Positions 38,029 through 43,485 of a stretch of 64,000 nt of DNA are shown here, piece after piece. The stretch is from Dimorphilus gyrociliatus (lineage: Eukaryota; Animalia; Annelida), in NCBI GenBank assembly GCA_904063045.1, contig CAJFCJ010000007.1:4161404-4225403 (forward strand), given 5' to 3'. The stretch's first letter is position 1. Each line of letters begins with the position of its first letter. A model generated the notes under the pieces. It saw nothing but the letters and a program-made list of their open reading frames with translations, did not search any database and was not told the DNA's origin. Position numbers and translations under genes: made by a program.

Positions 38029-41000
38029 CTATTTCTGAGTAACGAAAGGATCGTCGACTGGAGATTTGACATTTTGCGGTTGATATTCATTTTTACTTTC
38101 TGGAGGCTGATTCTAAAATGTTAAAAAGTAATATAATTATCTAGTTTTATATTCAATCTAGTCATGAAAGAAAATCTCCCTTCTTTCTCGGTTTTTTCTT
38201 ATTACCAGTTAATATAAATTTAAGTTTCCTTTTCTTAAAATAGGTGAATCGAGTAAAGCTTTATATATATATATATATATATATATATATATATATATAT
38301 GTCAATATAATAAAACAATTATAATAGCGTGGTCAGGCCTAAGCTGATTTCAATAGCATTGATTTGAGGCTTTTAAATGAAGGATAAAAGACAACGCAAT
38401 TATCTAGAATTCTATTTCAAACTCACTGGATTTGTCTTTAAATTGTTTGAGTAGTCGTTTGATACTGTGAAGAGTTCGGAGAAATTTGGTCCTCCTGTAG
38501 GCGCGTAATCAGCTGGTATTAAGAAAAAACGATTGTAATTATTTAGAAAGATCGTCGACCATCTCTTGTACTACTGAAATACTTCATCTATTTTTGAAAT
38601 AGTGTTGGCTATTCACAAGACTTTGTCGATCTATATTAACTTACCCGCACTCGGAGCGTAACTATGAGTGGGAAACGAATCTGTGTCCGCTCCTGCAGTT
38701 GTAGGTATCCCGCCAGCTTCGTGTGGAGCATTATGCATTACTCCAATCTATTTAATTTATATTAATAATTGATTGAATAGTCTACTAATTACACGAAAAA
38801 GATAATTTAACTCACTTGAGTAGTTCTAACGTGATATGGAAAGTTTGAATTAGCAGCTGACGGCCTCGTCAATATCTAAAAAATGGAATATTGAAAGAAA
38901 TAAGGTAATTATAATCACGATTTTCGTTTGTCAAGTGCTTCCAAAAGAAAAAAAAAGAGAGAGAGAGATAAAGAAAAGACAATAGATGTAAAGATTAAAG
39001 AAAACTCCAACAACAAATAAATCATATATATCAAGCAAAAACAACTTTAAAAAAGTAATAGCTATACGTGTAAATAGCAAATATACGAATATTAATAAAT
39101 TAATTATTCATAATTATTAAGTTAGTGCATAAATGAATATTTCCATCTAATTTTAAGAATTCTCAATAGCGAAAAGTAATAAGTCTAAATTTTTCAATAT
39201 TTAAAATGTGCAAAAAGAAATATAAATAATGAAATTAATAAATAAATTCCAGTGCAGAAAATATTAATTTTGTTAATTTAATTAAAAACAATCTCTTTTT
39301 ATAAAAAAAACAAGAAAAGGAAATTTTTAATTAAAATTTTCGTTTTTAATATATAAAATAAAAAATTGTGTTAAAATGTTAATTAGTATCGTTTTATATA
39401 TAAGAAAAGATGTGAGGTTTTTTATTAGTTTTATATATATATATATGTTTTCCTACCAAAAATGAGATATGAGCTAGGAAAGCTATAGAAACTTCCACTC
39501 CATTTACAACTTTCTCTCGAGCCCATTTATCAATGGCATAATAGGCGATCAAAGCGAATACAGGCATAGCCAAAAACCTGAAGATAATATAGAGATTGAG
39601 GAAGCTAATAGAAGCTCTTTTTTCTATGTACCAAATACATATACAGTAAATATCTAAAAAAAAAGTAAACTTATACATAGAGTTGACTATGAGTTGCGTT
39701 GCTTAAGCATTTTGTTTTTAATAGAGGGCACTAATAATCTTCAAGACAATGTAGAAGTTAAGGAGAGAAGAGAATTTTCCCCTTTACCCACATTCTATCA
39801 AATTTCACAGAGTAACTCCTGCCTAGCATTCTTAATTAGGAGAACTAAACAAGGAAAAGGGTGGAGTTTCTTACGCCTCTATTATAAAATTGTGGGCGTT
39901 TAAAAGAATAGAAGGGGGCAAGAGGGGGAAATGTCTCATCTTTCCTTCACATTATTTATGAAAACTTTTTTTTTGTCCCTCACCAAAAACAAAAAATAGC
40001 CACCGAATTGACATGAATTTTCAAAAATGACCACAACTTTTTCCCGAGCCCATTTATCCATAACATACATCGCAATCAGAACAATGACGATCAATAACCA
40101 AAACCTAATACATATTTACAAACCAATAAATAATAAAATACTTATATACTTGTTTAGATATAAATATATATAAATTTTATATGTAAATATATAGGGAGGT
40201 AGCAAATCTTTTAATCATAAACACTGGATGCTTTAGCTGGTATAACAGCTGGGTTTGAAGCAAATTAATCATTAAGAATTATCATTTTATCTAAAATATA
40301 CCAATAAAATTGAATAGGTTAATGTTCATTAATATGCCGAGCGGTGGAATGGTACGGCTGATTTTGGGGGAGGAAGGCAAGATCAACTTCTTTATAACTT
40401 AATGCTCTTTTTTTTAAAGATAACTTACTAGAAAGACAAACGAAAGGAACGCTATTTGAAGGCGAAGTGCAAAGTTAATAGCAAATGGTCGAATCCATGG
40501 TTCAGCTGCCCAAGTCATAGTGAAGAATGTTACAGGAAATAACCAAAACCTAAGTTTAGAAAGTTGTGTTTTGCAGGTGCCTAATTAATATTCAGCTTCG
40601 AAAAAGCTCTTTTTTTAAAGACAATTTGATTGATGGAAAAATAAATGATCAACTCTTTTGGTCCTAGATACAGTAGATTGATAGGAATATCCTAACTACT
40701 TACCATAGAGTATAGAAGATAAAGAAGGGGTAGTAAAAGCGAGACTTTTCTGGATAATGCTTTAATGTAAAGAAAATTGCATAGCAAAACCATATCCACC
40801 CCACTAATCGAAGGCCAATCAATCCGTAACCAGCTGGTGATTCGTACAGGTATAAGACAAGACCAGGATCAAAGACCTATTTTATAGTTGTAGAGAAAGA
40901 ATATTATAAATATATATGAGTCGATACTCTAATTACCTGTGTTTGATAAATGAACAATCCAACATAAACAAATACGTAAATAGTCATGAAAACGGCAATT

Positions 41001-43485
41001 TTTATCGTTCCCCATTGACTAATTCTTCCTCTTGTTATGGTATAACCTTTTCCCATTAGTATCAGCATAAGCAAGAATAACAGTGTTGAAAGCGATTCGA
41101 AAATTCGTCCTATATTATTTAAATTGTTTAAGAAAAAGTTAACTTTTCTTTCAAAAGTTAATAATTCAAAAAGAACTTACCAAAAGTCTTTATTCCTCTG
41201 TTCTCCAAGCCGTCGTTAGCGTATTTTCCAAGATAGATGCAAGTTATAAATAGGAATAACACTTCGCATACTAAAGAGACCATATACATTTTATAAGTTG
41301 TATGAAACAGTTGACGCGCTTTCAGTCGTACTGCATTAAAACAAAATATTTAGTATTTACTATACATGTAGTTCCCTCTATTGGTATTGCTTAGAGTTAA
41401 TTTTCTTCCTTTCATATCATATTAATACCTTTAGAGGGAATTATGTAAATAGAAAAAGAAAAGAAAAATATTATGTCTTAAGAGAAAAATAAAAATAAAA
41501 TCAAGAAATGAATGAATAAAAAGAAATAAAAAACTAACCAGCGCAATAAATTGAAAGACAGAGCATAATTGAAAAGATGACCAAGAATGCAATATCAGTC
41601 TCTAGGATATCTGTTGATAAAATAAAAACAAAAGAAAAAAACCATGCATTAAATATTTCTGTGCAAAAAATTGTATAAGTTTTTTTTTAAAAAAAAATGA
41701 ACAAAAACTATAATGTATCTATTTATGGAAATATCAATACCTTTATATACTGTATGTATGCATTATAAACTAAGTTTTTTGACAACTAAATAATAATGAT
41801 AGAGAAAAACGAAATTAAAAGAAGATATGAAAGGGATAGAATATATATTCTCTCCCTTTCTTGAAGATTAGTGAATTTTAGTTGCTTTTCTCTTTAATTG
41901 ACCCTTTAACTTACAGGCTACATATGTAGACAATAGTAAAATCATCCAATGAGCTATTAAGAATCCCATATTCGTTTCTAATATATCTGTATCATTTTAG
42001 TTATGTTATTATAGCAAAAAGTTGAAAAGTTGACTTGTTAAAGGAAACTGGGCGGAGCTATTATAATTTATTTGATTAGCTTTACAAATCTTGACTTTCC
42101 ATAAGAAAAGTCGCATTGTTATGTGTCAATTACTCTTTCCTTATTTTTTTTAAACCTGATATGGCTAAATACCCTTTTACTTGTATTTATGTTAAAAGAT
42201 AGGCCGTTTTTCCCATAGTAAGCTATCTATTGTCAATATTATTAATGAATGAGCTAATTAAGGTTATTCAATAAGGCAGGATAATTGGTATAGTTTAGGA
42301 AATATGAGAATGTCTACTTACAAAATTCATCGGCTGAGAAATGTTTAGAAAAGAGACCATTTCCATTAGTCATAGTAATGTCATATTCCAAAAATAAACC
42401 CTGAAAATATGTTCATGATTTCCATTGATACATAGTAACTTAGTCCAAAATCAATATTACTTACATATTTACTATTACAATTGGAGACGGCAATAAACCA
42501 CCAACGTTCTCTAGCTGACTTAAAGCTTCTTGAACCGGAGCAATTATATATATCTACTCCATTGTCTTTTTCAATTCTGCAGCCAGACCAAGCGTATCTG
42601 TGAAAAACAAAAGCGAATTTTCTTATCAAAAACCCATTCTAAAAAATTAATATAAGATCTAAGTACCTCGTGGTTAAATTTATTACTTGGTTATTCTCCG
42701 GTTTTAGAACGGATTCCTTTTCCGGGCAGCTCTGTGTCAATTACATAAGAAGTTTAGTGACTGAAATATCAAACATGCTTGGGCAGAAAAAAATAAATAG
42801 AAAAAGTAAACTATTAAGACCAATGAAAGATATAACATGGTGTTCAAGAGATAAAAGGCCTATTCGCTCAGTAATTAAAATAAATAAAAAAAAACTAAAG
42901 TTTTTGATTCATTGTTTTTGTCATATTTTACAACATCATATGCTTTTGGAACCTTGGATGATGTCTTTTTACCATAGACATTAGGCCATTGATCGTCGAA
43001 ATATAAAAGAACGCGTTGATGGGCCTCATAGCCCATGTCGTATGTCTGTGGAAATGATAAGAATATAAATAAATTTGCGTACTTTTCCTTGTTTGTAGAC
43101 ATTCGGCCATTGGTCGTCGAAATATAATAAAATATTTTCTGGTTGAAAGTCCTGTAGGTCAATTTATTGACATTCTCATAAAGCAAAAATGTAAATTTAA
43201 CAGCCATCTTTTGCGATTACAGCTTAAAACTGAAAACAAGGTACGTACCAGAGGATATTTAAACTTAAAAATCATCTCCCCGACATCAGATAAGAAGCAA
43301 AATCTTGTTAAAAAAGACCAGTCCTGATCATATAAAGTAAATTATTGTACTTTTCTCTTCCATATATATATATTAAACCGATTAATCACACTTACATCTC
43401 TTGTCAGTATTCTCCCTTTCACAACCTTGGATTTAACACTGTTTAAACTAATTACTAAGAAGCTGATAAGTAATAAAATTTTCAT
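38029..43485 (-). CDS. TMEM145: TMEM145 (GOST/GPR180 family 7-TM protein) with three clusters of duplicated alternative exons
   Basis: MKILLLISF..|[13 protein letters not shown]..|[10 protein letters not shown]|[17 protein letters not shown]|[17 protein letters not shown]|FSADEF|YILETD|[13 protein letters not shown]|[16 protein letters not shown]|YESPAGYG|KWAREK|[20 protein letters not shown] match TMEM145 in order. Terminal exon ends at TAG 38031-38029. Confidence 0.95.
38263..38300. repeat. (AT)n microsatellite in a TMEM145 3' intron
   Basis: Pure tata... run of about 37 nt. Confidence 0.9.

Follow-up and report, generated by a model that had tools for sequence, protein, structure and literature searches.

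A 64,000 nt window of contig CAJFCJ010000007.1, from the miniature marine annelid Dimorphilus gyrociliatus, carries on the minus strand of 38029-43485 a gene of approximately 5.5 kb encoding the seven-helix protein TMEM145. Three of its 15 exon positions, the third (E3), seventh (E7) and eleventh (E11), are occupied by old tandem duplicates, which are likely to serve as alternative exons included one at a time, giving isoforms that would probably differ in the partner they engage. All seven exons at these positions lie just where an earlier sequence-only reading had placed them, and each has AG and GT at its two splice sites and stays open in the phase that the gene requires; within each of the three clusters the tandem copies are homologous, equal in phase and flanked by intact splice sites. 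With the other 12 exons placed through splice sites and homology, all 12 possible choices of a single copy at E3, E7 and E11 give an open protein, of either 511 or 519 residues.

Duplicated exons of the Dimorphilus TMEM145 gene

At the DNA level the copies are 52-63% identical to one another, hence they are neither assembly duplicates nor recent. Judged from these sequences, the copies are old and their synonymous sites saturated; the proposed duplications are genuine. When scored against position-specific profiles built from the proteins of 49 other species, Dimorphilus being excluded, the E3 copies reached 37 bits (E3a) and 30 bits (E3b), those of E7 44 bits (E7b) and 29 bits (E7a), and those of E11 69 bits (E11c), 51 bits (E11b) and 6 bits (E11a); the E7a score was not equalled by any of 1000 shuffles of its own residues. 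One copy in each cluster had been suggested to lie close to human TMEM145, and one copy in each is indeed the nearest to a primate (Pan paniscus) TMEM145, namely E3a, E7b and E11c, with 19 of the 23 E3a residues being identical to the latter. Divergence at replacement sites (pN) is well below that at silent sites (pS) between E7a and E7b (0.34 against 0.97), between E11b and E11c (0.34 against 0.74) and between the conserved cores of E3a and E3b (0.13 against 0.59), which indicates purifying selection on these copies; E11a is the exception, as described below. Both E7b and E11b are better conserved than the expressed E7a, which argues for their use somewhere. A hidden Markov model scan of 36500-45000 detected no further copies.

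The assignment of the gene to TMEM145 made in the earlier reading is borne out by domain and full-length matches. E5 alone matches the Pfam family TMEM145_N (PF21892) with 54.5 bits (E = 2e-14), whilst the curated cut-off of GPR180/TMEM145_TM (PF10192) is exceeded individually by E8, E9, E10, E11b and E11c, with E-values from 8e-7 to 2e-13 for E8-E10, 1.4e-5 for E11b and 1.5e-8 for E11c; E11a has no Pfam match. Over the full length, the best matches carry the name TMEM145 and are 50-60% identical. TMEM145 is a member of the GOST family, in which a luminal GOLD-like sandwich sits on a seven-helix bundle.

This fold was recovered in an AlphaFold model of the public coding sequence (CDS) DgyrCDS6700, made with a 50-sequence alignment (predicted local distance difference test score of 73, predicted template modelling score of 0.70), in which the sandwich is incomplete as E1 and E2 are missing. 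The strands fall within residues 6-127, and are followed by helices H1 (144-171), H2 (177-206), H3 (211-236), H4 (248-275), H5 (288-314), H6 (316-346) and H7 (349-374), plus a short H8. The combination of a beta-sandwich with seven helices resembles TMEM87A and WLS, which were also the best solved matches found by Foldseek, TMEM87A (E = 5e-6, TM-score of 0.61 by target) preceding WLS; none of the solved structures matches by sequence. Projected onto the model, E3 lies within the luminal sandwich, E7 corresponds to residues 144-166, the luminal two-thirds of H1, and E11 corresponds to residues 333-372, which span the luminal half of H6, nearly the whole of H7 and the turn of two residues between them. 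The label 'last-TM exon' previously given to E11 is hence imprecise.

The gene structure itself constrains how the copies can be combined. Each E11 copy is 121 nt long, which is not a multiple of three, and inclusion of two, three or none of them in the gene model shifts the frame; the reading frame would thus restrict productive messages to one of the three copies, with the wrong forms assumed to decay. The introns of this gene are short, ranging from 37 nt to 581 nt, where the lower figure is the spacer between E3a and E3b. This is far below both the next shortest intron in the gene, 60 nt, and the genome median of 66 bp (PMC7854359), and it is therefore probable that E3a and E3b cannot be spliced to each other; being too short for an intron, the spacer would leave one copy to be skipped, or both to be retained joined, in which case the composite of E3a, spacer and E3b, 199 nt in length, shifts the frame. 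Joining both E3 copies without the spacer, or both E7 copies, keeps the frame. Nothing that would prevent double inclusion was found for E7, although two of these 72 nt exons in one message would give the protein an extra helix and an inverted topology.

Exons of the TMEM145 gene, in coordinates of the 64,000 nt window
Feature	Position	Strand	Description
E1	43485-43396	-	ATG at 43485-43483, GTAAGT donor; start codon and signal peptide
E2	43323-43249	-	Phase 0, AG/GT; first strands of the luminal GOLD-like domain
E3a	43151-43083	-	69 nt, luminal-domain copy 1, AG/GT; nearest to other species
Spacer	43082-43046	-	37 nt, from E3a donor to E3b acceptor
E3b	43045-42953	-	93 nt, luminal-domain copy 2; 114 nt with the alternative donor
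E4	42731-42667	-	Rest of luminal domain; single copy here
E5	42597-42465	-	Rest of luminal domain; single copy; Pfam TMEM145_N
E6	42400-42322	-	Rest of luminal domain; single copy here
E7a	41986-41915	-	72 nt, helix-1 exon copy 1; diverged copy
E7b	41610-41539	-	72 nt, helix-1 exon copy 2, AG/GT; nearest to other species
E8	41330-41181	-	PF10192; E8-E10 encode helices 2-5 plus the first half of helix 6
E9	41109-40937	-	PF10192; within the block of helices 2 to 6
E10	40876-40704	-	PF10192; within the block of helices 2 to 6
E11a	40549-40429	-	121 nt, second half of helix 6, turn and helix 7, copy 1; strongly diverged
E11b	40104-39984	-	121 nt, copy 2, AG/GT
E11c	39577-39457	-	121 nt, copy 3; nearest to other species
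E12	38875-38816	-	End of helix 7, helix 8
E13	38747-38645	-	Cytosolic tail
E14	38512-38427	-	Cytosolic tail
E15	38112-38029	-	Cytosolic tail, stop

Outside the clusters, E2 is around 60% identical to the corresponding exon of oyster and Owenia. The acceptor and the first 12 nt of the exon are identical between E11a and E11b, and part of the intron separating them (40157-40194) is AT-rich sequence of low complexity. An A-rich motif ending in GAGC (AAAAAAGAGC) recurs at 40606-40621, upstream of E11a, at 40404-40420, just past the E11a donor, and at 39612-39623, upstream of E11c; this recurrence may be due to chance in AT-rich introns. No convincing k-mer motif common to the introns of the gene was found.

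Exon arrays at the same positions in other animals

Locus look-ups and profile scans were carried out in five other genomes, those of Owenia, Paralvinella, Pacific oyster, Lingula and amphioxus. A search for the exons in related genomes had been proposed with the original reading, and tandem arrays are indeed present at the same positions in annelids, the oyster and Lingula. Owenia fusiformis, an early-branching annelid, has two copies of E3, six of E7 (all 72 nt) and three of E11 (all 121 nt), every one bounded by AG and GT, and its annotated proteins contain exactly one copy per cluster; the two E3 copies are approximately 425 nt apart, and the models use one of them. In Paralvinella, E11 is duplicated and a pair formed by E4 and E5 is present three times. 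In the Pacific oyster (Magallana gigas) E11 is present twice, and the RefSeq isoforms X1 and X2 differ only in that 40-residue exon. Lingula anatina has three E7 copies, two of which are used in its isoforms X1 and X2, along with two E4-E5 pairs, and amphioxus likewise has two such pairs.

Comparing annotated isoforms within species, substitutions of E4-E5 were found in amphioxus, Lineus and Dreissena, of E6 in two hemichordates, of E7 in Lingula, and of E11 in Lineus longissimus, Mytilus galloprovincialis and the oyster. E4, E5 and E6, which are single-copy in the Dimorphilus gene, are duplicated in other phyla. One type of E11 is shared, at 62-80% identity, by Owenia, Paralvinella, Lineus, Lingula, Tubulanus, the oyster and Dreissena, with the extra copies having diverged.

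Some features of these loci are peculiar to single species. In Paralvinella palmiformis, the three tandem E4-E5 pairs lie at L003:3019-6738 and are all contained in a public model of 600 residues, which looks like a prediction stringing alternative exons together. The third helix-1 copy of Lingula (L004:16604-16672) was absent from all three RefSeq isoforms that were examined, and a block consisting of E3 and both E4-E5 copies is found twice in this genome (L004:6814-9118 and 11646-13961), encoding identical peptides; the second occurrence stems either from a recent segmental duplication or from the assembly. In Owenia, the donor of the sixth helix-1 copy is followed immediately by a 21 nt tandem unit of around nine to twelve repeats (L002:19079-19330), and further satellites are located in adjacent introns of the array.

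Dimorphilus itself has a second TMEM145 gene, on another scaffold (DgyrCDS2418-2422; L006:4798-7300). It is compact and around 61% identical to the first, with every exon present as a single copy; its E11 is 77% identical to E11c. A protein considered as coming from a close relative (P0031) was rejected as such, being the product of this second gene, the public CDS models of which are also shortened at the N terminus.

Transcript-derived models and alternative explanations

RNA support within the species consists of four public CDSs, DgyrCDS6698, DgyrCDS6699, DgyrCDS6700 and DgyrCDS6701, all of which are incomplete. For D. gyrociliatus, PASA and EvidenceModeler were applied to a transcriptome assembly to produce gene models and splice variants (PMC7854359). 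The four CDSs were reached by searching E10 against 1.84 billion representative proteins and then by word-index searches. All four are 100% identical to the window across every shared exon, and E7 and E11 are each represented by a single copy in every model, with E7a present in all four and E11c in three. The models thus support exons E7a, E11c and E3b, the acceptor of E11a and both donors of E3b. The exon end originally given for E3b is correct inasmuch as that donor is used in DgyrCDS6700 and DgyrCDS6701. However, it is not the sole donor: DgyrCDS6699, which starts inside E3b and retains the intron after E14, uses a second site 21 nt downstream (GTAAAA, with the GT at 42931), adding seven residues (42932-42952). 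This second site fits the donor consensus better than the GTTCCA found at the exon end, 42953.

None of the four contains E1 and E2, encoding the signal peptide and first strands, in frame. They start instead at internal methionines, such that all four proteins are truncated at the N terminus, and two are also truncated at the C terminus. The loss of the N terminus apparently results from the composite of E3a, spacer and E3b breaking the frame, and the exon clusters are probably responsible for part of the truncation overall.

Several observations weigh against the interpretation of the copies as interchangeable exons. E7b and E11b are present in none of the four public CDSs, nor is a path from E2 through E3a to E4; E3a is seen in transcripts only contiguous with the spacer and E3b, as a frameshifting composite. 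E11a is joined to E10 in DgyrCDS6701, but the model then continues into the intron and reaches a stop after four codons. In addition, E11a has diverged from E11b and E11c nearly as much at replacement sites (pN 0.57-0.61) as at silent sites (pS 0.68-0.72), and it replaces both the lysine at the start of helix 7 (354, invariant) and the adjacent glutamate (353, nearly invariant) of the P0270/50-protein alignment. A maximum-likelihood tree of 23 E11 variants over 40 columns was unresolved and revealed no orthology of copies between species; the arrays may be either ancient or of repeated origin. No docking or selector RNA duplexes above shuffled controls were detected in the Dimorphilus introns, although this single-sequence test has low power, and the description of the gene as 'Dscam-like' accordingly overstates the resemblance. 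The six-copy E7 array of Owenia similarly has no shared intron motif, only intronic satellites. Finally, the proposed effect on partner choice is drawn by analogy with WLS and mouse TMEM145 only.

Searches for further expressed forms found none: a protein search with E11b alone returned no candidates, one with DgyrCDS6700 returned no further Dimorphilus transcripts, and exact-match scans of metagenome contigs from the Joint Genome Institute, using the E10/E11 junction and a 28-mer internal to E10, returned no matches. Sequencing runs matching the gene were confined to a marine metatranscriptome with a low share of words and a probable DNA run. The proposal of mutually exclusive use is upheld in part, by the frame of E11 and, for positions 7 and 11, by models that other animals have from transcripts, whilst in Dimorphilus E7b and E11b are unseen and the E3 copies are found joined.

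These observations might be explained if only some of the copies work, with one main protein being made from E3b or E3a, E7a and E11c, and with E11a, and perhaps E7b and E11b, being decaying pseudo-exons, or else 'poison' or terminal exons, the inclusion of which leads to truncated or degraded messages. The divergence of E11a, its low profile score, its lost residues and the premature end of its sole transcript all fit such an explanation, as does the absence of E7b and E11b from the public CDSs. However, E7b and E11b outscore the expressed E7a on the profiles of other species, and their replacement sites have been held whilst their silent sites became saturated. All the copies retain their exact length, splice sites and open frames, when only 2.6% of 40-codon windows in the introns of the gene are free of stops. 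Even E11a keeps the conserved proline, tryptophan and arginine along with perfect splice sites, and its profile score was reached by just two of 1000 shuffles of its own residues. Diverged extra copies have also been kept in Owenia, Paralvinella, the oyster and Lineus. We therefore regard this as an unlikely, though by no means negligible, account of the clusters.

It could alternatively be proposed that the E3 pair is normally a single composite exon of 199 nt, acting either in regulated unproductive splicing or in the production of a protein from a downstream start, lacking the signal peptide. DgyrCDS6700 and DgyrCDS6701 start within E3a, at an out-of-frame methionine, and continue across the spacer and on into E3b, and the missing N-terminal exons of all four models agree with this. 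Nevertheless, the conserved core has been held in both E3 copies, and Owenia also has two, at a greater distance, of which its models use one. A protein without the signal peptide and first strands could not form the conserved luminal domain, and PASA models derived from Trinity contigs can merge isoforms with pre-mRNA. A composite exon is hence rather improbable as the normal state of this position. That the duplicates might be assembly artefacts or chance look-alikes can be dismissed, given that the copies are not near-identical, are homologous to the proper position of the family profile, are represented in independent transcript-derived models (E7a and E11a) and have counterparts in other genomes.

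Possible consequences for TMEM145 function

Should the copies be used one at a time, as we consider likely, the exchange would affect a region of strands in the luminal domain and, in the bundle, two-thirds of helix 1 and half of helix 6 (the luminal part in both cases) together with helix 7. In the relatives TMEM87A and WLS, the soluble portion of the cargo is bound by the luminal GOLD domain, and the bundle contains a large cavity that is open to the lumen and also, via a slot separating H5 from H6, to the outer leaflet (PMC9711517). Mouse TMEM145 binds stereocilin through its GOLD domain and tubby through its seven-transmembrane part, promotes the secretion of both, and anchors the pair in outer hair cells (PMC12789471). 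In WLS and TMEM87A, the parts that face the cargo are the luminal domain and the mouth of the cavity on its luminal side, the membrane slot lying between helices 5 and 6; by analogy, the exchanged pieces of TMEM145 would be partner-facing too. The gene would thereby probably produce several versions of these parts, and the isoforms would likely differ in the secreted or membrane-anchored partner that is bound or carried. To our knowledge, a client of TMEM145 is known in no invertebrate.

The closest precedents are the RefSeq isoforms of TMEM145 itself in Magallana gigas, Mytilus galloprovincialis, Lineus longissimus and Lingula anatina, where the same gene has one-for-one swaps at the same positions, with the same exon lengths. 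These species have one or two clusters each, whereas Dimorphilus has three, as does Owenia (2 x 6 x 3); no article discussing the isoforms was found. Exons 2 and 3 of alpha-tropomyosin are subject to steric exclusion, the branch point being too near the upstream donor; they resemble E3a and E3b, homologous exons that are probably likewise too close to splice together, the distance from donor to acceptor here being 37 nt. The two cases differ in that there are Dimorphilus transcripts retaining both E3 copies and the spacer, in a shifted frame. Exons IIIb and IIIc of FGFR2 are made exclusive by the reading frame, with messages including both or neither being degraded. E11 is likewise compatible with the frame only as a single copy, although Dimorphilus has three copies where FGFR2 has two, and decay of the wrong forms is assumed here.

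Several independent clusters of exclusive exons are found in Dscam1. An equivalent arrangement occurs in the muscle myosin heavy chain gene (Mhc) of arthropods (PMC3912159). TMEM145 shares with both the presence of several clusters in one gene, with a combinatorial potential of 12 in Dimorphilus and 36 in Owenia, but it has far fewer variants and the pairing of docking and selector sequences did not exceed that of shuffled controls. WLS, the Wnt carrier, and TMEM87A have the same GOLD-like luminal domain on a seven-helix bundle as TMEM145, and no alternative exons of this kind were found described for either.

One-at-a-time use of tandem exons is a known mechanism, but TMEM145 is without a published description of it in the literature searched: full-text searches on TMEM145 and for surveys of exon duplication in annelids and molluscs turned up no account of these arrays. 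The earlier reading, which knew of no such description, was right in this respect; however, substitution isoforms at two of the positions are already present in RefSeq, for the oyster, mussel, ribbon worm and Lingula.

A broader and more speculative proposal, which on present evidence we think doubtful, is that TMEM145 is an ancestral bilaterian 'programmable' cargo carrier, in which arrays have arisen or persisted at five positions across phyla, so that one gene would carry different clients in different cells. These positions would be luminal exon 3, exons 4-5, exon 6, helix 1, and the second half of helix 6 with helix 7, in annelids, molluscs, brachiopods, ribbon worms, hemichordates and amphioxus. 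The arrays would then lie exactly at the cargo-facing luminal domain and at the mouth of the membrane cavity, and the clients would be secreted or lipid-anchored. The mammalian sequences examined appear to be of a single version, known from hair-cell stereocilia.

Few genes have several clusters of one-at-a-time exons, and such clusters usually mark the specificity surfaces of the protein. With arrays present both here and in five other phyla, the luminal domain, helix 1 and helices 6-7 emerge as the regions of TMEM145 that are varied, which provides concrete targets in a GOST-family protein to probe for client binding, in a gene whose function has only recently been assigned, in mouse outer hair cells. 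A compact 5.5 kb gene with three clusters, from an annelid with a small genome, may also serve as a model for exon choice without obvious RNA docking sites.

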